A DNA stretch of 64,000 nucleotides from the sequence record MZ475891.1, one strand, 5' to 3'. Position numbers and translations under genes: made by a program. The notes under the pieces were generated by a model. It was not told the DNA's origin. It did not search any database and was given only the letters and a program-made list of their open reading frames with translations. Every line of letters begins with the position of its first letter. Position 1 is the first letter of the stretch. Of this stretch, positions 4,947-18,045 are shown in pieces.

Positions 4947-5984
4947 TTATTCATCCAATACTCCACTTATATCTTGGAACATGTTTTTATACACAAGGCT
5001 GCCTCCAAGTTTGTCCAGTCGTTCAATCGAAACATACATATGCGGTTCTGTATTCACCTGTGCCCACTTGTTGTCTGTACTCAGGTTTTCCAAAGAAGGA
5101 ATAAGAACAATGCTCAAGTTATCAGAAGCCCTAACGAAAGCCACATCGATATGATTCTTATTGATTCGAATGATGTATCGGTTGATTGCGTCCAAACCAA
5201 CCGTGCGATTGAACTCTACATCACTGACTGTATTCACCAAACTAATAAGGAAGCCTTTCGGGCGACTGTTTATGTCGAACAGCGAACTCTTCAACTCAGA
5301 GAGGGTAGTAGCCGAGAAGTGTTGAACATCATGGCCCTTGCCTCTTAGACACTCACCCAAGATGCGACTCGATTCAATGTGCGCGGTGTTGTCATCACGC
5401 ATGATATAAATCGGTGCACCTCTGTTGTATGTGCGCTCGGTAATCTGCTGTATCAGGTCGCATGTAGGCTCCGTAACAGTAGACAGGCCTTTATACGCAA
5501 TAACAAACTTGTCCTTGTACAGGTCGTAAATCTCAGGCGGCATGTACTTCATGTAATCGTCATCGAGGCTCAAAATCAATCGAGGCTTAACGAGAGGAAT
5601 CACAAGCTGCACAGACCGCAGAGCGTCCTTGTACTCCGTGTCAGATAGCACACGGTTTATAGGTAGGTACTGCACAGTCACATACGGGTCAGAGCCTGTA
5701 TCGACGATAGAGCGAACGGCGGTGCTGCCTACATTAGGACCTGCGGAGAACTGAGTGATAATCATCAAACTGTTCTGGCCTAAGCCCCCGCCACCAGCAA
5801 CTGTAGTAGCACTACCATCTGCATTCTGGACTGTCTTAGAGCGCGTCAGCGTTGGCGCTACTCGGTCGTCTCGTCCGTTATCGGCATATACATTAACTGC
5901 GCAACACCAGAGACAGCTTCCAAGAACGTAAGCAGCAATACGTTGTCGGGATCTGCGTCTGCCGGGTTGACGGTGTCCGGCCAT
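4947..5984 (-). CDS. Periplasmic binding protein type-1 fold (COG2984/ABC substrate-binding-like) with putative signal peptide
   Basis: Motif order SLMIITQFS...VQYLPINR...KPRLILSLDDD...FVIAYKG...IYIMRDD...TTLSELK follows the family pattern as I recall it (VLILxSY...EYMDTKR...PDVIIAxDDxA...VVFxG...I.VLxD...TxxEW); N-terminus RRRSRQR-hydrophobic-VYA|D. Start uncertain (127-nt overlap with 5858..6682). Confidence 0.65.
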   Translation of the reverse strand: MAGHRQPGRRRSRQRIAAYVLGSCLWCCAVNVYADNGRDDRVAPTLTRSKTVQNADGSATTVAGGGGLGQNSLMIITQFSAGPNVGSTAVRSIVDTGSDPYVTVQYLPINRVLSDTEYKDALRSVQLVIPLVKPRLILSLDDDYMKYMPPEIYDLYKDKFVIAYKGLSTVTEPTCDLIQQITERTYNRGAPIYIMRDDNTAHIESSRILGECLRGKGHDVQHFSATTLSELKSSLFDINSRPKGFLISLVNTVSDVEFNRTVGLDAINRYIIRINKNHIDVAFVRASDNLSIVLIPSLENLSTDNKWAQVNTEPHMYVSIERLDKLGGSLVYKNMFQDISGVLDE

Positions 5985-6682
5985 AATACTTCTCCTTTCT
6001 CGTCAGTGACATAAGGAATACCGGCGCCTTTACCCAATCCATGACGTAAGGCCCATACGGTGTCGGCATTCTCTTGAACGAACACAAGACCATGTACCTG
6101 TGCTTTATCCCCTGTCTGCTCAAGCGCTGTCACACGACTATCGAGTAACTGCGTTTGCGATTGGAGAGCACGAATCGATGCAAGGTTGGAGTTAACACGC
6201 GTGTTCATGTTGTTGAACATGGTGAAGAAGCTGTTGTTCATCGCAGTACGGACGCTGTCCGTGTACGACTTAGGAATCAGCTCATTGCTGTCAAACGTTG
6301 TTGCGCCTGGTCGAACGAATACCTTACCTTGAAGCGTACCGCCGCTTGCACTGATGATCTGAGGTGCAGGCAGATCAGCTGCGTCCCAAGTCTGAACAGT
6401 GTTCATCACAGTAGCGTAGTCCGTTTCCTCCTGCCACGTATTCTTGTACGGGCTGGTGGCTGTTTTAGACTTGCGGCGTAACACTTTCTTGTAGCTGGCG
6501 TTGGCGCCATCAGCAATGATCCAGAGACCGTTCAGAGGGAATGTATGCGTAACAGGTTCAGCAAACGCCAGTATGATAACGACGTCCGCTCCTACCTTAT
6601 ACACAATATCATTCGACGCCGAAAGTCCCTGCTGTTGCGCAAGGCTTACGAGCGTGTCCACATAGTTAGTCAACTGGCTCAT
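5858..6682 (-). CDS. Fibre-associated protein (coiled coil plus C-terminal W-x3-H-x-L-G module)
   Basis: LIPKSYTD motif, coiled coil ending LDSRVTALE, then WALRHGLG...VTDEKGEVLWP. Confidence 0.65.
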   Translation of the reverse strand: MSQLTNYVDTLVSLAQQQGLSASNDIVYKVGADVVIILAFAEPVTHTFPLNGLWIIADGANASYKKVLRRKSKTATSPYKNTWQEETDYATVMNTVQTWDAADLPAPQIISASGGTLQGKVFVRPGATTFDSNELIPKSYTDSVRTAMNNSFFTMFNNMNTRVNSNLASIRALQSQTQLLDSRVTALEQTGDKAQVHGLVFVQENADTVWALRHGLGKGAGIPYVTDEKGEVLWPDTVNPADADPDNVLLLTFLEAVSGVAQLMYMPITDETTE

Positions 6683-7142
6683 CCGAAACTCCTAAGGTTT
6701 TTAGAATTGAAGAACTTCTATCGGAGAAGGCTTTTGCAATTGACAGAGCAGCAGCCTTATCGATAACGATTGTGCTGATAACGCCTTTGGTGTTGCATAC
6801 GATTGTTTGAGGAGCGTAGTCAACACAAGCTAAGGCGAATAGCAGATGATTACCGAGTTCACCGCTGATACAAACGTCTACGTCGAGGTCAGGCACGTAA
6901 ACGTTCTGGTTAATCTCAGAAATAAACTGCGCCAGCGCAACGGGATCAAACTTAGGAGGCGCTGTATCGTATTCCGCAATCAAGTCAATCTGTTTGGTTG
7001 CGGGATCGTATTCAAATGCGTTAATGTCCGAGATGATACGACCAAAGAGTTCGTTGCTTACTTCAATGCAATACTCATCAGACTTCTCACGGACGCGACC
7101 AACTACCTTGTTAGTCGCTGGGTTGATACGAATGATTGGCAT
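6666..7142 (-). CDS. Putative tail-fibre assembly/chaperone-like protein
   Basis: 158 aa, adjacent to a collagen fibre gene; acidic; position-based call only. Confidence 0.4.
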   Translation of the reverse strand: MPIIRINPATNKVVGRVREKSDEYCIEVSNELFGRIISDINAFEYDPATKQIDLIAEYDTAPPKFDPVALAQFISEINQNVYVPDLDVDVCISGELGNHLLFALACVDYAPQTIVCNTKGVISTIVIDKAAALSIAKAFSDRSSSILKTLGVSDEPVD

Positions 7143-7144
7143 AA

Positions 7145-7966
7145 TTAGTCGCCCTCTGCACTATACCAGAAGTCCCAGCCGACAACGTTTGTGCCAGTAG
7201 ACTTAATGGTGAAGCCACCCAACAGGGCGTTCTCGTTCATCGCACTTGTACCATCCAGATTATATAGCTGGAAGGTCCGAGATTGATTGGTTGCAGTATT
7301 GACGAACGTGATTTGCACAGACACACAGCGGTTGATGAACGGGCTGTTGAAGATAACGTTAATCGTATCAGTAGTGGATGTATTCACCACACGACCAAAG
7401 TTCTTCGTGTAACCAGTGTTCAGATCGCGGTCGCTACCAATCCATGCGTTAGGAATAGGCTGACCTGTGATAGGGTCAAGCGCTTGTGCTACGAGATACT
7501 CATTGATAGCAGCATCACGTCCTGCATTACCAGTAGGACCAGTTGGGCCTGTAGGACCCACACCGCCTGTGTTACCTGTAGCGCCGACAGGGCCTGTGTT
7601 ACCAGTAGGACCTTGACGGCCACGCTGACCACGAGGGCCAGGACAACCGTCTTCACCATCAGCACCATCACGACCATCAGCACCAGGCAGACCACGTAGA
7701 CCGTCTTTACCCTGCTTGCCTTCCTTGCCTGACTTCAACTGGTCGGCAGTAGGCAGACCAGGCACGGTGCTCTGACTACCGTCTGGCCATACAATAGTAA
7801 GCGTACCACTCACTGGGTCGAACTGTACGCCTTGTGATCCCGGAATGTTAGCTGCCTCTGTCGGGTCAATAAACGCAACAGAGTTCAGCGTTTGTTTGCC
7901 GAGAACTTTACCGACAGGAAATGCACCGCCATCGATTAGTCCCGGACTTATTTTCTGCAAAGACAT
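7145..7966 (-). CDS. Collagen-like fibre protein (24 Gly-X-Y triplets) with C-terminal beta domain
   Basis: GKEGKQ...GNAGRD uninterrupted triplets preceded by the FD..G.L....G....GLPT cap. Confidence 0.85.
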   Translation of the reverse strand: MSLQKISPGLIDGGAFPVGKVLGKQTLNSVAFIDPTEAANIPGSQGVQFDPVSGTLTIVWPDGSQSTVPGLPTADQLKSGKEGKQGKDGLRGLPGADGRDGADGEDGCPGPRGQRGRQGPTGNTGPVGATGNTGGVGPTGPTGPTGNAGRDAAINEYLVAQALDPITGQPIPNAWIGSDRDLNTGYTKNFGRVVNTSTTDTINVIFNSPFINRCVSVQITFVNTATNQSRTFQLYNLDGTSAMNENALLGGFTIKSTGTNVVGWDFWYSAEGD

Positions 7967-7976
7967 GGGCTAGCTC

Positions 7977-8180
7977 CTAACCAGTCAGTGTTGTCCAATC
8001 AGGTTGGCCTGATTGACCCGCTTCGGGATTCTTAACTTTCGTGTTGTTGATTGTCATACGAATCCAACGCACAGTACCGTCAGAATCCTGCCAGCGAATC
8101 TTCGTTCCACCGTATGCTAAATTAGCTACCCATCTGTCTCTGCTAGGGTCTTTGAAAGCAAGACGTGCATAAGCAGGCAT
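7977..8180 (-). CDS. Small virion protein
   Basis: 67 aa, Trp-rich; loosely resembles the N-terminus of 11107..13128; AGGAG RBS. Confidence 0.55.
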   Translation of the reverse strand: MPAYARLAFKDPSRDRWVANLAYGGTKIRWQDSDGTVRWIRMTINNTKVKNPEAGQSGQPDWTTLTG

Positions 8181-8189
8181 AAGTTCTCC

Positions 8190-11063
8190 TTAGATTTCGT
8201 CAGGTTCCCAACACAGAATAGGACGGCGATACACTTGGAATACGCCAGTAGGTGCGTAGCTTGAGCTAAGGTATTCTTTAGCGTTTGTACTGAGGCTACG
8301 TTCTGACGTAAGCAACTGTTGCCTGTTGTGCGTCCACTGACAACGACCACAAGACTCTGCTTCGATACCTGCATCTGAATCCCAACCAGGCACGTCGAAT
8401 GTTTTGTTCCATCCGTTGAAGTGGTGAGTAGACACCGCTCCGTTGCCTGTTGCACACAGCACCATATACTGGTAGTCAGACTCGAAGTAGATAGGCACGT
8501 TACGGCCTGTAGGGATAGAAGGACCGTTAGCGTTATACGTCAACTGCCAACCAGTACGGTCTGCTGAGCCTGTAGACATGAACAACGGTCTACGGATAAT
8601 CATCATGATACCGTTCTGCGTTCCGTTGTCGCTAGTCTTAGTGCAGTACGCATTACAGCGCAGCGCACGGTCAACAGTGAACAACGTACTGTTGGAGAAG
8701 TCAGCATTGTACAGGTTAGCAGCCCACTGAGGTAAGTTAGCAGCTTCTGGTACAATGAAGTGGCGCTCTGCCAGTTCCAGATCACCGTAGCGGTCATAAG
8801 CAAACACGATATACTCATAGCCTGCATCGATCTGAATGTTGTGACCTTGAGAACCCACACCAGTCCACTTCCAAACAATCTGCCAGTCGTTAGTATCACG
8901 TCCAGGCGTATCGTTTATCAGGCCGTACTTGCGTTCGTATATCTGCCACACGCGAGAGCCACCAGTCGCAGCAAAGTACAAGCTGCCTGGATTAGAGCGG
9001 TCACCACCACAACGAGTAAGATGGTCAGGGCCTGCTTCGTTGTAAGCACTGGCTCCGCCTACACCGTCAAACATTTCCCAGTTCATCATCAAGTGAGAGG
9101 TGCACAACTCATTTGGTCCGCTATCATCCGTTGTCGTAACAAGATATTCGTACTGGTCAGCAAACGGATAGTAGACAGTCTCTGTTCCTGCCATAGCAAC
9201 ACGACGAACCCAATCGTGTGACTGCACTTTAGGTACAGGGAAGCAAGGGTTAGTCACAGACACGACGAAACTTTTAGTCTCGTACATCGGCAGCTTTTTG
9301 AAGCGGTTATCACGAATCGTTACCGTGTGCTTCATGCCGTAAGTCTGTGCACCGTCCATACCGCCTAGCACTTTGTAGTAGCTGAGATGCGCACTCTTGG
9401 TGCTCTCGTATAGCCCCGTGATGCCAAGCGACATGGCGCTGTTACGGTCAGTACCACAGCAATACTGATTGCCGTAGCTGTCATACGCGAAGCCCACAGA
9501 GAAGTAGCTATCAGGGTCAGACGACTGAGATCCGTAGTACATCTCAGTAGGCGCATTGCCCTCACCAACACCAGGCAGGCCAAAGCAGCAATAGCAACCG
9601 CGATACTGATACTGTCCGCCTTCGTACACGCGACGAGAAGCACCTATGCGATACATAGCACCAGCAAGTCCGCCTTGAGTACGGTTAACGTTCGCCGTGT
9701 CATAGGAAACGACATAAACAAAGTGGTCGGCGCCAATCGAGTTCAGGAACGCAGCCATGTTAGCAGCATTCGTTGTTCCTGGTGCAGTACCTTCGGCCGA
9801 AACGTGAATGTCATACGCTCTGCGATCTACGAGCACTTGGTCGGACTTGCGAATCTTGTACACGTTGAAGCCGCGAGAATCTCGGTAGTACACGCCATTC
9901 ACATACGTGTAACCAACATCGCCTGTGTCAAGCGTGCGCTGATAACCTACGATGTGGCTGAACACGCTACTACGCGCTTGCAGACTCGCACCGTTATCGT
10001 TCGACCAGTTGACAGATACATCACCAGCAGCCATACGCGCAGCCCAATCATCAGGCTTGTATGGGTAAGTGGTCACGTCAAAGTTAACGCCATACGCACT
10101 GCCTATTTCTACGCAGCACGGGTCACGATAGATGATCTCTGGGTCAAGAATAACATCGTCAGGAATATCGACTTGACCACAGTACATCTGACGCCACACA
10201 CCAGCTTGACCGCCGATAGAACCCGGGCCAGCAGCACCTGCGCCAGAGTTGAACTGGTAAGCAGCAGACGCACGGTAGTTCTTTTGGTTGCTTAACTGTG
10301 GAACGTTCAGCCAGCCTACGTGGTCACCAAAAGCATTGATGGACTTAGAACGCGCAGCCTGAGTAGCGACAACGTTAGCAGCACCATTGCTTGTGATACC
10401 AAGCGGACTAAAGATAGCGTTGAAGTTAACGTTACCCTCGTACGGACCTTTCTGGAGTACAATCAAGCTGACGCCGTTACGGTGTGCTTCACGCAAGGCA
10501 TTAAGCATCGCAGTAGGCATCGACTGACCGCTAGACGACAGCAGCAACATAACGCAGGACCATTGCTGGAAATACTTGTAGGTTCCGTCGTAACCGTAAG
10601 CACCAGCATTGATTTCATCCCACGTATGAGACAGCATATCAAGAGGCATACGCTCAAGATAGTGAACAAGCTGTCCCCATGACTCCATTGCAGATTCATC
10701 ATCCACAGAAGCGCCATCACTAATGACCAGCATCGTCGAGCCAGCAGTGATGTTAGAGTTATATGCACGCTCGGTCAGGAACTGGCGCAGCGCACCCATG
10801 TTGTTAATTGTGGTATTGCGATAGTTACCCATCCAGCCGTAGCCTTCAGTAACCATTGGACTATCACTGCGAATGAAGCTACCGTTCATATACACAGAAC
10901 CGTAACCGCAAACATACGCGAGAGCATGACCATCAACAACAAAGGATGTGTAGCGATTGCTATCAACGCCCATCGCATCAACAGCAGCTACGGAGCCATC
11001 ACCTACACCGCCAGTAAAGACAGGAGTAATGCCTCGTGCATACAAGCAACTTTGTTGCAGCAT
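8190..11063 (-). CDS. Large virion/fibre protein with ILEI (PANDER-like) domain
   Basis: GFNVYKI...RAYD...AAFLNSIGADHFVYVVSYD...IGA...YRGCYCCFG..G.G matches the ILEI pattern (~9490-9875); three C-terminal W...Y.Y.V repeats. Confidence 0.7.
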   Translation of the reverse strand: MLQQSCLYARGITPVFTGGVGDGSVAAVDAMGVDSNRYTSFVVDGHALAYVCGYGSVYMNGSFIRSDSPMVTEGYGWMGNYRNTTINNMGALRQFLTERAYNSNITAGSTMLVISDGASVDDESAMESWGQLVHYLERMPLDMLSHTWDEINAGAYGYDGTYKYFQQWSCVMLLLSSSGQSMPTAMLNALREAHRNGVSLIVLQKGPYEGNVNFNAIFSPLGITSNGAANVVATQAARSKSINAFGDHVGWLNVPQLSNQKNYRASAAYQFNSGAGAAGPGSIGGQAGVWRQMYCGQVDIPDDVILDPEIIYRDPCCVEIGSAYGVNFDVTTYPYKPDDWAARMAAGDVSVNWSNDNGASLQARSSVFSHIVGYQRTLDTGDVGYTYVNGVYYRDSRGFNVYKIRKSDQVLVDRRAYDIHVSAEGTAPGTTNAANMAAFLNSIGADHFVYVVSYDTANVNRTQGGLAGAMYRIGASRRVYEGGQYQYRGCYCCFGLPGVGEGNAPTEMYYGSQSSDPDSYFSVGFAYDSYGNQYCCGTDRNSAMSLGITGLYESTKSAHLSYYKVLGGMDGAQTYGMKHTVTIRDNRFKKLPMYETKSFVVSVTNPCFPVPKVQSHDWVRRVAMAGTETVYYPFADQYEYLVTTTDDSGPNELCTSHLMMNWEMFDGVGGASAYNEAGPDHLTRCGGDRSNPGSLYFAATGGSRVWQIYERKYGLINDTPGRDTNDWQIVWKWTGVGSQGHNIQIDAGYEYIVFAYDRYGDLELAERHFIVPEAANLPQWAANLYNADFSNSTLFTVDRALRCNAYCTKTSDNGTQNGIMMIIRRPLFMSTGSADRTGWQLTYNANGPSIPTGRNVPIYFESDYQYMVLCATGNGAVSTHHFNGWNKTFDVPGWDSDAGIEAESCGRCQWTHNRQQLLTSERSLSTNAKEYLSSSYAPTGVFQVYRRPILCWEPDEI

Positions 11064-11106
11064 ATTATGTCCTTAGATCGGCAAGAGGGGCCGAAGCCCC
11101 TTCCTG

Positions 11107-13128
11107 TTAGCCAAATACAATCTCAGTGATTGCAAGATACGTCACATCGTTTGAGTCGCCACGGTCACCAGAACCGTAGGCCATCAACCAAATCTCTTCA
11201 CCTGCAGGGATGTTAGTGTCGAATGTGATACGTTGCAGAACGTTAGCGCTTGAGTAGACACGTTGCGCTGCACCAGCACCTGCATAACGTTCGTAGATGG
11301 ACATGTCGTGCCAGCTACCGTTATTACCATCAAACACCCAATCAAATGTGATTCGCTTGATAGGTCGAGTGAAGAAGTTATTCCACTTGAACCAACCATT
11401 CGAGCCACCCCAGAAGTTCATATAGCTGCCGTCCCAAACTTTCAGGTTCTCAATGCCACCGCTGACTGTACGACCGCCAGTCTGTGTGAATGCATAGCAG
11501 TACCATGGGAATGGATCTGAATCAGGCGGCTGTGAGTTGCCACCAGCAACTGTGATGCAGCGATACGGAACTGTGAAGTCTCTGACGTTAATGTGCGGAG
11601 GCTGAATCGGACAGTACACATAGTAAGACCAGTCACACCCGATAGGGCCTGTAACGCGCACTGTGATCTCAGAACGCAGAACATGCTCAGGGTATTTCCA
11701 GAACTCAAGTGTACCAACAGCGCCTGCTACGACAATCGACGTATCAAGCAGATTCATATCACGGTCAAACACCTCGAACTTGGTGTCGAATGAGTTAGCA
11801 ACGCATACGACCAGCTCTGCTCGGATATCTGTCTGTGTGCCTAACGCAAAATTATCTTCTGTGGTTGGATGACCGGCAGAGTAAACGCTGTAGCTTTGGC
11901 ACGGATGCATGAACTCACGCGCACCACGCTCCGAAGGACAATAAAGGCTGTAGAAGAAGCTGTCGAGTGATTCAGCGTTTCCAAAGTCTTTAGATACCAC
12001 GCGCACCATAATGTCACACGCGATGTTCTTAGGGTCAAAGTAGAAATACAGATAACCCTCAAGTGTCTTCGCATCAAGCGTTGTTGCAATACGTCTACCG
12101 TTTTGATACACCTCAATGAAGTCGAGCGTTTCCCACGAGGTATAATCAAGGTACATCCAGCCTGCTGTCCAGCCCACAAAGTGATAATACTCGAACGCGT
12201 TAGCATTCTGAATACGCTCTGCAATAGGCCACACTGAGGCATGACACGGAGCTGGGAAGACTGGCGTGCCGATATAGTCAGGGTTGATAACGTCAGGGTA
12301 ATTGATAACGTCATACGCGGCTTGACTGTCGAGCGCTAACCCACCACGGTCAGAAGGTGCAGAAAGCAGAGGAGGATAAACCATCATGCTCCAGCCGTAA
12401 CCTTGAGTTGTGCGCACACGTATCATGATACGCATATCGGCAGCGTCAGGGTCAAACTGGAACTTGATGCGAGAACGTCCTGTTACTTTACCGCAAGATG
12501 AAGCTACGCGCACGCCCATGTGATAGACGTCAATGCTTGCACCAGCAGGAGCATACGAAGCAAAGTTAACCTCGACATAACCTTCAGTTGCAGGCAGAGC
12601 GTAGATCGTTTCAGTGATAACAGCACCACGACCGTGAGTAGATGCATAAGGCACGTTGGGGTTAGCATACGTGCCCAGACCTGCTCTCGATGCTACGCCT
12701 ACAGGGTCATAAGACTCAAGCGTCTTGATGCCTGGGCGATTGATACTGCGACCAGTTGGCGGTGCTGACGAGTTGACTACACCGAAGCCTGTACGACCCG
12801 CATCAGGCAAGTCGAAGCCTATTGGATAGCCTCCAAGAATCGTATAGCTCTCACGACCACCACTGCCTATACCGTTACCGGAGCCTTTGGTTGTTGACGT
12901 AGGGCCACCGCCACATGCACCTGTTTCGAGATTTGAACAGGGATCATCATACGTAGGGTCAAACGTGTCATCGATTAAATGCCAGCGCTTGCCCCACTGA
13001 TTACGCACGCTGAACTTCTCAGGTGTTAGAGGAGTCCAGTCACCTTCCTTGGTGCGAACGTACATGGGCGTATCGACACAATCAAGCCAACCGTTATTCG
13101 CAGCATTACGAACGCGAAAACGTGACAT
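11107..13128 (-). CDS. Virion protein with three tandem beta-sandwich repeats
   Basis: Three ~85-aa units with I.V.V/IRV and ending WSMMVYPP, FFYSLYCP, WSYYVYCP. Confidence 0.65.
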   Translation of the reverse strand: MSRFRVRNAANNGWLDCVDTPMYVRTKEGDWTPLTPEKFSVRNQWGKRWHLIDDTFDPTYDDPCSNLETGACGGGPTSTTKGSGNGIGSGGRESYTILGGYPIGFDLPDAGRTGFGVVNSSAPPTGRSINRPGIKTLESYDPVGVASRAGLGTYANPNVPYASTHGRGAVITETIYALPATEGYVEVNFASYAPAGASIDVYHMGVRVASSCGKVTGRSRIKFQFDPDAADMRIMIRVRTTQGYGWSMMVYPPLLSAPSDRGGLALDSQAAYDVINYPDVINPDYIGTPVFPAPCHASVWPIAERIQNANAFEYYHFVGWTAGWMYLDYTSWETLDFIEVYQNGRRIATTLDAKTLEGYLYFYFDPKNIACDIMVRVVSKDFGNAESLDSFFYSLYCPSERGAREFMHPCQSYSVYSAGHPTTEDNFALGTQTDIRAELVVCVANSFDTKFEVFDRDMNLLDTSIVVAGAVGTLEFWKYPEHVLRSEITVRVTGPIGCDWSYYVYCPIQPPHINVRDFTVPYRCITVAGGNSQPPDSDPFPWYCYAFTQTGGRTVSGGIENLKVWDGSYMNFWGGSNGWFKWNNFFTRPIKRITFDWVFDGNNGSWHDMSIYERYAGAGAAQRVYSSANVLQRITFDTNIPAGEEIWLMAYGSGDRGDSNDVTYLAITEIVFG

Positions 13129-13139
13129 GTACTATCTCC

Positions 13140-13631
13140 TTACGGGCGAATCCACAGTGCACCTGCTGAAATCTCTTGGTCGAGTGCAGGGTCAGTGTCT
13201 TGAATGAATATCTCCAAGACACCTGGGTTTCCAGGAGCACCAGTCGGTCCTGTAGCACCGGTAGGACCTGCTGGACCACGAATACCCACATAGCCTTGCT
13301 TGCCTGGCAGACCATCGATACCACGAGGACCAACACATCCGTCAGTACCACGCTTACCGTCAGAACCCATCAGGCCGTCGATACCATCACGACCAGAAGC
13401 ACCAACGCCACCTTCAGGGCCGTAGCCGATGCTGTAGATAGTAGGCAGGCCAGAGATAGCGAGCTTTCCGATACTCGGAATATTGATAGACAGCACACCT
13501 GTCAGTTGATCGAAGGCGCCTTGTAGCGTTGTTTCGTCTTCGGCCACATCAACAGACACACCGCCTTGAGTTGCTACTACCTTACCAGACGCATTCGTCT
13601 TGAGTAGCGATATATCAACCTTTTCTACCAC
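13140..13631 (-). CDS. Short collagen-like fibre protein (23 triplets)
   Basis: GPEGGV...GNPGVL; cap motif GLPT; C-terminal AGALWIRP. Confidence 0.85.
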   Translation of the reverse strand: MVEKVDISLLKTNASGKVVATQGGVSVDVAEDETTLQGAFDQLTGVLSINIPSIGKLAISGLPTIYSIGYGPEGGVGASGRDGIDGLMGSDGKRGTDGCVGPRGIDGLPGKQGYVGIRGPAGPTGATGPTGAPGNPGVLEIFIQDTDPALDQEISAGALWIRP

Positions 13632-13640
13632 GAGAACTCC

Positions 13641-14273
13641 TTATGGCCATGTGGTGCCTTGATCTTTAGTAGGGTCGACCCAGAGCGTGCCGGCAGCTAC
13701 AGCTCCTGGCTGGGTAGCGCTAACGATAATTGCAAGACGACCGGAAGGACCTGCAGGACCAGTTGGGCCAGTAGGACCAGTACCACCAGTAGAGCCAGTA
13801 GGACCAGTACCACCGCGAGGACCAGTAGGTCCAGTCGGCCCCATAGGTCCTTCACGACCTTCTCTGCCCGTAGGCCCAACATTACCGTCACGGCCATCAC
13901 GACCATCCGGGCCTGGTATGCCTTGCTCGCCATCTGGACCAACAGGGCCTGTACAGCCTGGACCGCCCGTTGCACCATCACGACCATCACGACCGTCTTT
14001 TCCGTCTGCACCTGTTTCACCTTTCTGACCTGTACGACCTGCTGGAATATCAGACGCAGTTGGGAAACCTGAGACTTTGAGACTACTGCCGTTAGCAAAG
14101 CGCAGAGTTAACACGCCCGCAGTAGCGTCATACGAGGAATCTGACGTGACTTCTGATGGAGCTTCGGACTCCGCGCTGTTGACAACAAGTGTACCGCCAG
14201 ATGCTCGGACAGGTGTCGCAACAGAGCTTACGCCCGCAGCGATTAAACTTGTTTTTACCTTTATCAAACTCAT
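13641..14273 (-). CDS. Collagen-like fibre protein (34 triplets)
   Basis: GRTGQK...GPSGRL; cap motif GFPT; C-terminal AGTLWVDP. Confidence 0.85.
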
Positions 14274-15709
14274 TACGTCTTCTCCGCCTGAGCAGTCATA
14301 TCCGTGTTATGAGCCAGAACATCACCAACGAAATAGCAGTCGAAAGGTTCAACGTCTATGTCTACGGTATTAACGAGTTGGTCTATACGACGACATTCGT
14401 ATACAGACACAGGACCTTTACGTCCTCTGACTTGCATTCCTTGCTTAACTTCACGAGCAGGAACATAGCGCCATTGCTTATCATCGTAGATCAGCACAGG
14501 ATGTTCGTGCGTAAACTTCTGTCCGTTAATGACGAAGTAGTGATCTTCCTGACCGTATTTGAGTGCTCGAACAGCAGCATAGACATTCTTACCTTTCAGA
14601 CTTGGTGAGGACCATTTACGGAACTCTTTAGGCTGATTGGAGAACGATGCAAGCATATCACCTACAGACAAACGCTCAACAGGCACAGAGCCTGCGATTG
14701 TATGCACAGTAGAGCCGAACACGATACAGCCAGATGTTTTACTCACAGGGTTACGTGCAACTACGGTCAGAGCAGACTTCACTGTGACTGTAGGTCGAGA
14801 GGGTTGCCCCATGTCTGTTACTAAACAACTGATGGTGCCTTTGATTGTACGATCAGCACCGAGACCAAGACGCAGATAGAAGTTAACTATACAGGTGTTA
14901 GTCTCTATGGCGTCAAGATTAACGCCCTCAGTTGTTGTGATTGTCCACTTGTACTTGTATGGACCCACACCGCCACGCGCATTGACAGGCAGATAAGCAA
15001 GCGAGGTGAATACGTCAGACCCTTGTACTGTGCGCGTGCCTACCATGTACAGACTAGACACAGAAGCAACAAGTGGGCTGATAGTAGGAAGAGGAGGTGC
15101 TGGCGATACGTTAGCAGTCGGGTACAGCCACACGAACACGTTAGATGCAGTGGGCTGCACATTAGACAGCACAGCAGTTTCGATAGGCGCAGGACCAGTA
15201 GGACCCGTTGCGCCCGCGATACAGCTTGGACCGTCATTGCCTCGTGGACCGAGTATGCCAGTAGGACCCGTTGGACCGATTGGCCCTGTAGGCCCGTCTT
15301 TACCGTCAGGACCCGTGTCACCGTCAGGACCAGTAGCGCCGTCACGACCAGGTTCACCCGCAGTGCCGTTAAGACCTCTAGCACCAGGGAGACCACCACA
15401 GCCGTCAGCACCAGTAGAGCCATCACGTCCATCACGACCGTCACGACCAGCAGCGCCTGGCGCACCTCTCTTACCTTGCTTACCTGAACCAAACATTGCA
15501 CTCGTAGGCAGGCCGGGGATATTAACTAAATCCCCATTCTGTTTGATGAGTACGAGCACGCCGTTCTTACTGTCAAACTTTACGCTTGCGATCTGTGTCG
15601 TTGTCAACACATCGGAGGATTCGAATTGAATACCACCAGCAACAGCAACAACGGATTTACCTTCATCGTTGCCTGTTGTCTCGATTTGCGAAAGTTTTAA
15701 GTCTGTCAT
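14273..15709 (-). CDS. Collagen-like fibre protein with Ig-like segment and C-terminal Hint domain
   Basis: 29 triplets + CIA break + 3 triplets; [10 protein letters not shown] Ig-like motif; Hint domain at the C-terminus. Confidence 0.85.
14306..14728 (-). other. Hint (Hedgehog/intein) autoprocessing domain, endonuclease-free, 141 aa
   Basis: G|CIVFGSTV (C1), [14 protein letters not shown] (block B TxxH), VDIDV...[10 protein letters not shown]|T (blocks F/G, +1 Thr). Confidence 0.85.
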
Positions 15710-18045
15710 TTAGGCTCGACCTTAATGCACAAGTTACCAATCAGCTTCGAACCGTAGCTCGTGATTTGGGCATTACTGATACGCACCTTAGCGACAATAT
15801 CAATAAAGCCTTGAGGTTGGTTCTCGGCTAACACAACAAGCATCTGGGTGATACTGACATTCGAATATGCGATGATCTCGGTCAGGTTTTCTGTAGAATC
15901 AACAACGTTGAAACCACTGCTACCCGTACCTTTAAGACCACGACCATATTCAGCCTCAGCAAGGCCAGGCGTCTTGTACGATAGAACGTACTCGATATGC
16001 TCTTTGCCGCTGGTGGCCTTGAAGCCAGGACCCAATTGACACTGGAAGTCTGCAACACAGGTAAGCATAACACCTTTCTTGAACTCGATGCGCTGCGTAA
16101 TCGTCAGCTCCTCTGAGTCCTCAACATCTTGGTGGATGTTGTACATGTTCTTAGGGTCAGCTTCTTCTGCGAGCGCTTGCGTGTTGCTGATGGTGATGTT
16201 CGGCCACTCACCACTGATCTTAATGCCTTCACCCTGAATGATTTCAGGAACGAACATAGGCACATCAATCGGCGAGAGTCCCTGACGCTTGAACATGAAG
16301 CCTGTTGGCGTAGGGATAACATCAATGATAACGCCATCAACAGAACTGTCTTTCGAGCCTACAGCCATCACGTTTTCGAAGATGGTGATTTCCACCAGCG
16401 TGTCTGCTGGGATAGGCGATACAGTCTGCAACGAGTTACCAACAACGGTGAAGTCAGAAGGATGAATCGTCAGACCACCCATCGTTGCAACAACGTGCGC
16501 TTTGTTCAGTGGGCTAGTCGGAAGAATGTATGTATCAGCATCATAAGGAAGGCGATACTGAGAAACACGCATACGAGTAGACCAGTTGGCGCGTTCTTCA
16601 TAGCGGGCAACATAGAAAGAATATTTCTGGCCAGAAGGAATTGCCTGCGTTAGCGTAATCTTATTGCCGTTGTTGATCTTGTAGACTGTGGAGGGCTGCC
16701 ACGTTGAGCCAACAACACAGAAGACCATATCGGCGCTTTCGATTACTTGACTACCAAGAGAGAACTGAGTTGTCTGACCGTCACCTACACCTTCGTACAG
16801 CTCAAACAGAACGACATGGCCTTGAGATGGTTCGATACGGAACTGTCTCAGGTCAAGCAGCATCTGTTGTTCAGGGTAGGACGAGAGCAGCAACTGATCT
16901 TCCTGAACGGAGTATGCAGTACGCGGCTGGAGAACGCCTGACGTGCCTACAAACAAATCAGTAGAGCTATCAAGAATCTCGGTCAGTTGGTAACGCAGAG
17001 CATCAGGAGTAGCTGTGGTCACAACAGAACTAAACAGCATCTTGCCTGGAGGTACAAACAGGCTTGCAGTCGTCTGACGTGAGCCACCAACAGGACCCCA
17101 ATACGGTTCGTTGTCTGCACCACGCATCAATCCCCAAGTGCTCGGCACATCGTTGTTAGCAGGCCACGGGATGCCAGCGCTCGGCGTAGTTGGGTTAGTG
17201 ATTCGACGCCACACAGCGATAGACGTTTGCGCAGATACGAATGGGATAGCGCTGTCCAAGTTGACAAGCTGCTGGTTGGTGTATTTGAAGTGACGACAAG
17301 CGCCTGCACCAGTACCTGCAATAGTCTGCACGAGGACGGTCTCACCTTCTTTGAGAGAAGTAAGACTTGGAATCTTAAACGTGTTAGCGTTAATGAAACC
17401 AGTAGAGGTAATCTGGCCGCTGAACACACGGTCGTGCTCGCTGAAAGCCCAATAGTAAGAGCCTGCACCGTAGCGCGAAGCCTGACCAGGAGATTTAGAG
17501 CCATCGCTGTTGATATGCATGTCCAGCACAGACACAACGTTGAACACGTTATCGTTCAGGCTAGGCAGATTCTCCAGCGTTGCTACACTCGGGATAGACG
17601 TGTAATCTGCCATCTCAACAGCAAGAATCTTCTGGACGTCCTGCGTCAAATGGATGAGCAAGCTAACGCGAGACACAGAGTTTGGAACTGCAATGATAGG
17701 CTCTTGCAGAACAACGTGACCGAAAGGACGGTTGTCTTTGAGCATGATCATCAACTCACCCACACGCTTCAATTGCTCACCAGCAGCGTAGGTCAGTTTT
17801 ATATCAAAGATAAAGCGTGCGCTATTCTCAGAGAGAACCTGTACATAGGACAGAGCACCGGAAGCAAGCTCGTTGCCAAGTAACTGCTCTGGAACCTCAG
17901 ATGGGTTAGAGCCGATATAGTCACCTGCTTTGAACGAAACTGGCTGCACAGCAATGCCGCCTGCGTTAGCGTTCGCAACGGCCTGTTCTCCCTGAGGCGT
18001 TAAACGCAGAGCGTCAACGTAGATAGATTCATCAGCGGCCATCAA
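15706..18045 (-). CDS. Tail fibre/baseplate attachment protein
   Basis: N-terminal [12 protein letters not shown]...F.AGD resembles tail-collar fibre N-termini; repeated GDG.TT.F / V.V.G..Q..S.Y modules; position next to the wedge gene. Confidence 0.6.

Follow-up and report, generated by a model that had tools for sequence, protein, structure and literature searches.

Within a 64,000-nucleotide stretch of sequence record MZ475891.1 (the window, by which we mean the whole of that stretch), four paralogous genes encode collagen-stalk proteins that carry a cysteine at one and the same height. The source is the Erwinia jumbo phage pEa_SNUABM_13 (264.7 kb), a member of the genus Snuvirus and one of the jumbo "hairy Myoviridae." Each main collagen run in the window contains only one cysteine. 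It is the X residue of the 10th Gly-X-Y triplet (Cys-10X) and lies 35 residues past the threonine that closes a conserved N-terminal cap. A first-pass annotation of this DNA, made from the letters alone, had proposed that the cysteine is under selection, and homologs bear this out: far from varying freely, the position is occupied by Cys-10X in 113 of 117 distinct sequences. Our leading explanation, offered tentatively, is that these cysteines face outward and crosslink parallel, in-register stalks of the four paralogs. The observation itself stands on firm ground, and the mechanism has moderate support.

Architecture and cysteine register of the four paralogs

The four genes, here called A to D, lie on the minus strand, as do all features described below. 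Translation reproduces, residue by residue, the register that the first-pass annotation had described, G[LF]PT-x6 followed by a single cysteine at X of triplet 10, and also its counts of 24, 23, 34 and 29+3 triplets. Paralog A (7145..7966, 273 amino acids [aa]) consists of a cap, a 6-residue linker, 24 triplets and a C-terminal globular tip domain. Its cap hairpin motif, 25 residues from FD to GLPT (7748..7822), was placed by translation and ungapped alignment with the other paralogs; GLPT occupies residues 70-73, the linker reads ADQLKS, the collagen run spans 7514..7729, and Cys108 (TGT, 7643..7645) stands in GCP. Paralog B (13140..13631, 163 aa) has GLPT at residues 61-64, the linker IYSIGY, 23 triplets (13215..13421) with Cys99 (TGT, 13335..13337) in GCV, and a 24-residue beta tail. 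Paralog C (13641..14273, 210 aa) has GFPT at residues 69-72, the linker ASDIPA, 34 triplets (13734..14039) with Cys107 (TGT, 13953..13955) in GCT, and a 30-residue beta tail. Paralog D (14273..15709, 478 aa), whose stop codon overlaps the start of C by one base, has GLPT at residues 66-69 and the linker SAMFGS. Its main run of 29 triplets (15224..15484), with Cys104 (TGT, 15398..15400) in GCG, is followed by a cysteine at a Gly position (Cys163, triplet 30, 15221..15223); beyond it lie three further triplets, then a middle domain and, at the C terminus, an intein-like domain. The cap spacing is ungapped and identical in all four proteins, [FY]D-x3-G-x-L-x5-[NDS][GI]-x6-G[LF]PT, or 25 residues; the earlier description of this motif had the residues right and the gaps between them miscounted. 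What had been called a modular set of fibers is likewise recovered as a common N-terminal module with different lengths and tips.

Judged by sequence, A to D are ordinary members of the collagen-repeat and phage tail-fiber families. All four match Pfam Collagen (PF01391) at 49.8-53.3 bits against a gathering threshold of 27.2 (E 2.4e-14 for A), and all four match the tail fiber protein family phrog_8745 at E values of 4e-24 to 1e-39 (3.5e-31 for A), over cap and collagen and, in C, over the tail as well. In addition, D matches the virion structural protein phrog_38766 from end to end (E 4e-250), the tip of A has a weak match to Gp53-like_C in Pfam, and the ortholog of A in a sister phage is annotated in RefSeq as a tail fiber protein. 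The neighbors of the collagen set include baseplate wedge, tail protein and PAAR genes. The cap itself found no match in Pfam or the PDB by sequence search. An AlphaFold 2 (AF2) monomer of C has a mean predicted local distance difference test score (pLDDT) of 50.7 and is confident only in the cap strands (residues 47-68) and the tail strands (181-199), at pLDDT ~78-80; the collagen part of this single-chain model is meaningless.

Two further features of these proteins deserve mention. A motif after the collagen, hydrophobic-x-V/I-S/Q ... P ... G-x-L/I-W-V/I-x-P, is common to B and C and recurs in a looser form in D; it lies in the tail of B (13140-13214), in the tail of C (13641-13733) and just after the collagen of D; in C it coincides with two AF2 strands of pLDDT ~79. 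Since B and C contain little more than cap, stalk and post-collagen tail, they may be connectors that carry another protein. In all four runs, triplets 4-7 are charge-rich G-[RK]-D repeats, and among non-Gly positions Y of triplet 7 ranks second in conservation, with Asp in 95 of 108 distinct sequences (0.86 bits). These charges may stabilize a hydroxyproline-free helix or may form a docking surface.

Conservation was assessed across the relatives of pEa_SNUABM_13. By megablast, window positions 7000-16000 are 100% identical to the pEa_SNUABM_13 record, eight sister Snuvirus phages are 97.6-98.8% identical, and Y3, AD1, Alexandra and others are ~75% identical. The annotated phages sampled for the module were Y3, Yoloswag, JA29, fHe-Yen9-02, PaBG, HRDY3, NCTB, Lu11, pEa_SNUABM_5 and Afa-NA1, and uncultured relatives were taken from IMG/VR contigs. 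The resulting set holds 193 copies, or 117 distinct N-terminal blocks, of which 108 entered the entropy and codon analysis. All complete related loci retrieved have the four-gene set, whether they come from phages of Erwinia, Dickeya and Yersinia, from PaBG and Lu11 or from uncultured relatives, and a cap-only hidden Markov model finds exactly four cap-bearing open reading frames (ORFs) per complete locus. No further cap module was found in the complete genome of the close relative pEa_SNUABM_7, and no other collagen run of at least six triplets in the 64-kb window. A metagenome scan with collagen-only patterns returned generic collagen ORFs, with the cap in one locus only (L090, on the same contig as the uncultured lineage L029). 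In the searches made, the capped family is confined to this jumbo-phage group.

Across this group, Cys-10X is found in Erwinia, Dickeya and Yersinia phages, in the Pseudomonas phages PaBG, Lu11 and HRDY3, in phage NCTB and in uncultured lineages. Its entropy of 0.23 bits is the lowest of any non-Gly position, compared with a median of 2.75 bits over X and Y positions, and identity between paralogs over the N-terminal block is ~39%, mostly Gly. Among C-type protein clusters from a large protein collection, 24 of 24 carry the cysteine. Both TGT and TGC occur at this position in every paralog type, and the constraint therefore acts on the protein. A background cysteine frequency of 2.1% was obtained from unrelated viral collagen ORFs, but odd frames and Cys-rich proteins contaminate the set, which makes it unsuitable as the basis of a probability. 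Cys-10X is under strong selection, beyond what chance would give. The four exceptions are all D-type proteins of the JA/Salmondvirus clade, which have Asn instead and represent a single event.

The cap, and not the first Gly, is the point from which the register is counted. In D- and A-types of the L029/L030 lineage, triplet 1 reads A-x-y, and in the D protein of Lu11 a Gly-to-Ala break occurs at triplet 6 (A-E-D); in both cases the distance of 35 residues from cap to cysteine is kept. A-type stalks of the Lu11 clade have doubled to 48-49 triplets, and their cysteine remains in triplet 10. The collagen lengths are kept for each paralog, at 23 triplets in B, 24-25 in A, 29+3 in D and 34 in C (>100 sequences), and none of the 117 sequences interrupts its Gly-X-Y repeat near triplet 10. 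In the clade of HRDY3, Lu11 and a relative, the fiber set has been remodeled: the A-type protein, with the long stalk, reaches ~680 aa, the C-type is extended by ~120 residues at its C terminus, and D and C are separated by an inserted 2.5-kb gene. The cysteine register of this clade is unchanged.

A second cysteine, at X of triplet 20 (Cys-20X), is present in six distinct D and six distinct C sequences and in none of 55 A and B sequences. Within a genome, D and C have it both or neither. Its carriers are PaBG, three related uncultured lineages (L028, L036 and the L172 group) and the uncultured lineage L031. The residues that flank it are unlike between D and C, and Cys-20X is therefore not a product of gene conversion. 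In a tree of the adjacent gene for a 779-aa protein, the nearest relatives of the PaBG clade are the Lu11/HRDY3 clade, as its sister, and L031 groups with NCTB; neither the Lu11/HRDY3 clade nor NCTB has Cys-20X. The D architecture of L031 (29+3 triplets and a long C-terminal part) also resembles that of NCTB and not that of PaBG. The Cys-20X state needs two changes on this tree, and constraining it to a single clade costs 66 log-likelihood units (approximately unbiased test, p-AU 8e-9). Joint gain or loss in D and C at the same height is what an in-register contact between D and C stalks would predict. The spacing between triplets 10 and 20 was also considered as a sign that both cysteines share a face of the helix; for a 7/2 or a 10/3 helix, many spacings other than this one would do so, and it is thus compatible with such an arrangement and is not evidence for it.

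Helix geometry and possible bonding partners

We built an idealized triple helix from approximate collagen backbone dihedrals. Per triplet it rises by 8.55-8.63 Å and twists by 50-56 degrees, which approximates the accepted values for a 7/2 helix. In this model, the C-beta–C-beta distance between X residues of the same triplet on different chains is 8.0-12.3 Å, that between X and Y residues on different chains is 4.5-5.2 Å, and that between Gly positions of adjacent chains is 3.4-4.5 Å. X side chains point away from the helix axis, at a radius of ~4.8-5.6 Å. A disulfide needs roughly 4-4.5 Å between C-beta atoms. On the modeled distances, Cys-10X cannot bond within its own canonical helix.

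These observations can be combined as follows. A to D would be four paralogous collagen-stalk fiber proteins of the baseplate/fiber module, each most likely a homotrimer; unequal helix lengths, each of them conserved, favor homotrimers over heterotrimers. The beta-cap and the invariant 6-residue linker presumably trimerize the chains and set the start of the triple helix. Cys-10X, being an X residue, would face outward on the helix, ~8 nm from its start and out of reach of the sister chains. The four stalks would leave co-planar caps and run side by side in register, and disulfides would staple them to one another once the virion meets an oxidizing medium. The result would be a bundled stem that diverges into arms of 23, 24, 29+3 and 34 triplets with different tips, in which D and C are the best-supported neighbors. 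The same height in four otherwise freely diverged proteins is expected if the cysteines of different paralogs must meet. Given this strict identity of height across paralogs together with the D–C coupling, bonds between stalks are favored. The overlap of the D and C genes, the abundance of cysteine in other proteins of the module and the precedent of disulfide-linked phage tails point the same way. The first-pass annotation had listed a fixed-distance crosslink, to a common anchor, among its alternatives; the fixed distance fits best of the possibilities that it raised, whereas for the partner we lean toward other stalks.

Its other proposals fit less well. An interchain disulfide or knot inside one triple helix was suggested to lock the chain register. 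A locally unwound helix could bring the thiols together, and D-type proteins do carry a cysteine at the Gly position after triplet 29, where the model would allow a bond. At Cys-10X, however, the modeled X–X distances are too long, each trimer offers three cysteines, an odd number, the helix is uninterrupted around triplet 10, and cap and linker already define the register. We consider such a knot quite unlikely. Nor would a metal serve in its place, as X side chains that point off axis would keep the three thiols of one trimer from converging on a single metal ion. The annotation had also allowed for heterotrimers; one helix might, for instance, combine D and C chains, in the manner of chains A, B and C of C1q. 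The overlap of the D and C genes and the covariation of their second cysteine are in keeping with this, but it is very improbable: the paralogs differ in helix length and each length is conserved, each chain has its own post-collagen beta segment that would be out of register with the others, and same-triplet X residues in a mixed helix would, by the model, be no better placed to bond.

Two readings dispense with bonds between stalks. Each stalk could be tethered separately, through its cysteine, to a common noncollagen anchor such as a baseplate, collar or sheath protein with equivalent sockets ~8 nm deep. The conserved cap, the linker and the charged triplets 4-7 resemble a shared docking module, the four genes sit in a baseplate module beside the 779-aa protein, which is tail-collar-fiber-like, and a 1508-aa tail protein, and it is easy to accommodate that one clade has lost Cys-10X from D only. 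This reading is weakened because, among the genes examined within ~9 kb, neither the 779-aa nor the 1508-aa neighbor has a cysteine conserved across lineages. The only neighbor with invariant cysteines is a 673-aa protein, which has six, and the even number suggests internal pairs. Moreover, Cys-20X at the same height in D and C would need matching changes in the anchor. We judge a common anchor to be somewhat unlikely, though it is the strongest rival to bonds between stalks. Alternatively, the cysteine may have a role other than crosslinking, as a free thiol packed on a partner, a metal ligand shared with a neighbor, a modification site, or an aid to folding or nucleation of a hydroxyproline-free helix. 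Conservation alone does not tell the role of a thiol, assembly takes place in a reducing cytoplasm with no phage oxidoreductase found, and one clade tolerates Asn at the position in D. A role in folding or stability, however, needs no identical height in four diverged paralogs and leaves the coupling of the triplet-20 cysteines unexplained, which makes this group of roles rather improbable.

Several points also weigh against the stapling of stalks to one another. Three Cys-10X residues per trimer are a poor fit to a bundle of four rods. JA/Salmondvirus phages retain Cys-10X in A, B and C; if bonding to D were strict, its loss from D would leave a thiol unpaired. The D–C coupling amounts to only about two independent changes, read from quick trees with long branches, of a neighboring gene and not of D or C, and with the tested group defined after the tree had been seen. 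The host cytoplasm is reducing, no DsbA or thioredoxin gene was found in a sister genome, and no Erv1-like oxidase was found there either, a weak negative in that the control genomes for Erv1 were themselves without signal. Lysis would therefore have to come before oxidation. Finally, published AlphaFold 3 models of collagen bundles are unreliable (PMC11869133).

Other features of D and the neighboring genes

At Cys163 of D, a cysteine takes the place of Gly, and triplet 30 reads C-I-A after G-P-S. Cys163 is kept in every long-form (29+3) D, including the clade that lost Cys-10X, and in the 29-triplet D proteins of the PaBG and Lu11 clades a cysteine directly follows triplet 29. Lu11-clade D proteins have extra cysteines nearby, at Y of triplet 28 and in a C-x6-C segment. 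Because the modeled spacing between Gly positions is short enough, Cys163 could bond within the trimer and could be a true intratrimer knot.

The intein-like (Hint/BIL) domain of D (residues 328-468, 14306-14728) starts at Cys328 and ends in H-N, after which come Thr and nine residues. The D C terminus scores 18.1 bits against Pfam Hint_2, below the cut-off of 28.4, and gives a whole-length match to the BIL domain 2LWY in the PDB at E 0.063. This is an add-on that can be removed: the D protein of JA29 aligns up to residue 321 and then stops, and the D proteins of Lu11, HRDY3 and L029 type also lack it. It may cleave itself off once the fiber is assembled. The JA clade lost both this domain and Cys-10X of D, and we considered whether the two are tied. 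They are not, since D proteins of Lu11, HRDY3 and L029 type keep the cysteine without the domain, and A, B and C never had the domain.

A gene for a 158-aa protein (6666-7142) follows A. Its Cys25 and Cys116 are present in 12 of 12 orthologs outside the JA/Salmondvirus clade and in 0 of 4 inside it. This loss tracks that of Cys-10X in D in a single lineage, which makes it a lead only and possibly a coincidence. Between B and A lie genes for a 957-aa protein (8190-11063), with an ILEI domain and 20 cysteines that include C-C pairs, and for the 673-aa protein (11107-13128), which has 13 cysteines, the six invariant ones being kept across 24 orthologs. From their sequences, both look like disulfide-rich extracellular fiber parts. 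The 957-aa gene is missing from Pseudomonas-side lineages. In Yoloswag, NCTB and Afa-NA1, several neighbors of the collagen genes, including the ortholog of the 673-aa protein, bear the annotation "intein domain" or "large intein domain"; in the window copy of the 673-aa protein, no Hint domain is found by Pfam. Also inside the fiber module is a 274-aa protein (5858-6682) that PHROGs and RefSeq call an HNH endonuclease. It has no Pfam match, its N terminus matches tail-protein PHROGs, and the nuclease annotation looks doubtful.

Significance and relation to known systems

Collagen-like stalks are common in phage fibers, and how several fibers are organized on one baseplate is mostly unknown. 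In four paralogs, one residue has stayed at one height from a time that precedes the divergence of the Erwinia-phage and Pseudomonas-phage lineages, and a second changes jointly in two of them; together they provide a concrete hypothesis for fiber architecture. If the stalks are covalently bundled, they would be a natural case in which different collagen triple helices join into a heteromeric assembly through cysteines that face outward, and such bundling would be relevant to collagen design and to the engineering of phage host range. If the thiols are instead free, they present an unusually clean case of unexplained constraint. We found no paper that describes the collagen nature of these fibers or the cysteine register. 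In the hairy jumbo myoviruses, the hair-forming proteins are unassigned, with annotated tail-fiber genes named as candidates only (PMC6143709); collagen is mentioned neither in that paper nor in the paper on PaBG.

It is useful to compare these proteins with other fibers and collagens. Intermolecular disulfides in tail structures have precedents among phages of Gram-negative hosts, in Agrobacterium phage Milano and in siphovirus tail-tube rings (PMC10811340, PMC13576161), where the bonds link sheath or tube subunits and not collagen fibers. Similar in overall design are Scl1/Scl2, BclA, PRD1 P5 and the phage "collagen-like minor tail" proteins, which likewise have a globular or beta cap, a hydroxyproline-free and charge-rich Gly-X-Y stalk and a tip; for proteins of this kind we found no report of a register-locked cysteine common to a paralog set.

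Among animal collagens, cystine knots lock collagen III and the FACIT collagens, and they resemble the phage register in that cysteines link collagen chains at a fixed position. The collagen III knot, however, consists of two adjacent cysteines at the helix end within the same trimer, whereas Cys-10X is single, lies mid-helix and, in our model, is too far from its counterparts in the same trimer. Among the phage cysteines, only the D-type cysteine at the Gly position of triplet 30 resembles such a knot. In the 7S domain of collagen IV, the N-terminal ends of four triple-helical molecules lie side by side in an overlap that disulfides between the molecules hold in place. The four molecules are identical there, run partly antiparallel and have additional lysine-derived crosslinks, whereas the phage set comprises four paralogs with a single cysteine each (two in some D and C sequences).

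C1q and the other defense collagens offer, along with the 7S domain, the nearest parallels. C1q helices start from a common N-terminal end and form a parallel, in-register bundle with disulfides near its start before they separate into heads; the bundling of the phage stalks would follow the same plan. In the (A-B)6(C-C)3 assembly of C1q, the disulfides are A-B and C-C (PMC11869133). The differences are also clear. The C1q cysteines lie in a short N-terminal noncollagen segment, whereas the phage cysteine is an X residue 10 triplets into the helix. C1q consists of heterotrimers of three chains in six copies, whereas the phage set would be four different homotrimers. The phage proteins have no sequence homology to C1q beyond Gly-X-Y, and Pfam finds no gC1q, lectin or fibrinogen head domain in A to D. 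Without a gC1q head, they are not members of the C1q family. Going further, and as speculation, disulfides might staple the four homotrimers into a single stem of 12 chains, which would be the viral equivalent of the C1q "bouquet," with four arms of fixed, unequal length and different tips, which could be the fiber or "hair" apparatus of the hairy jumbo myoviruses.

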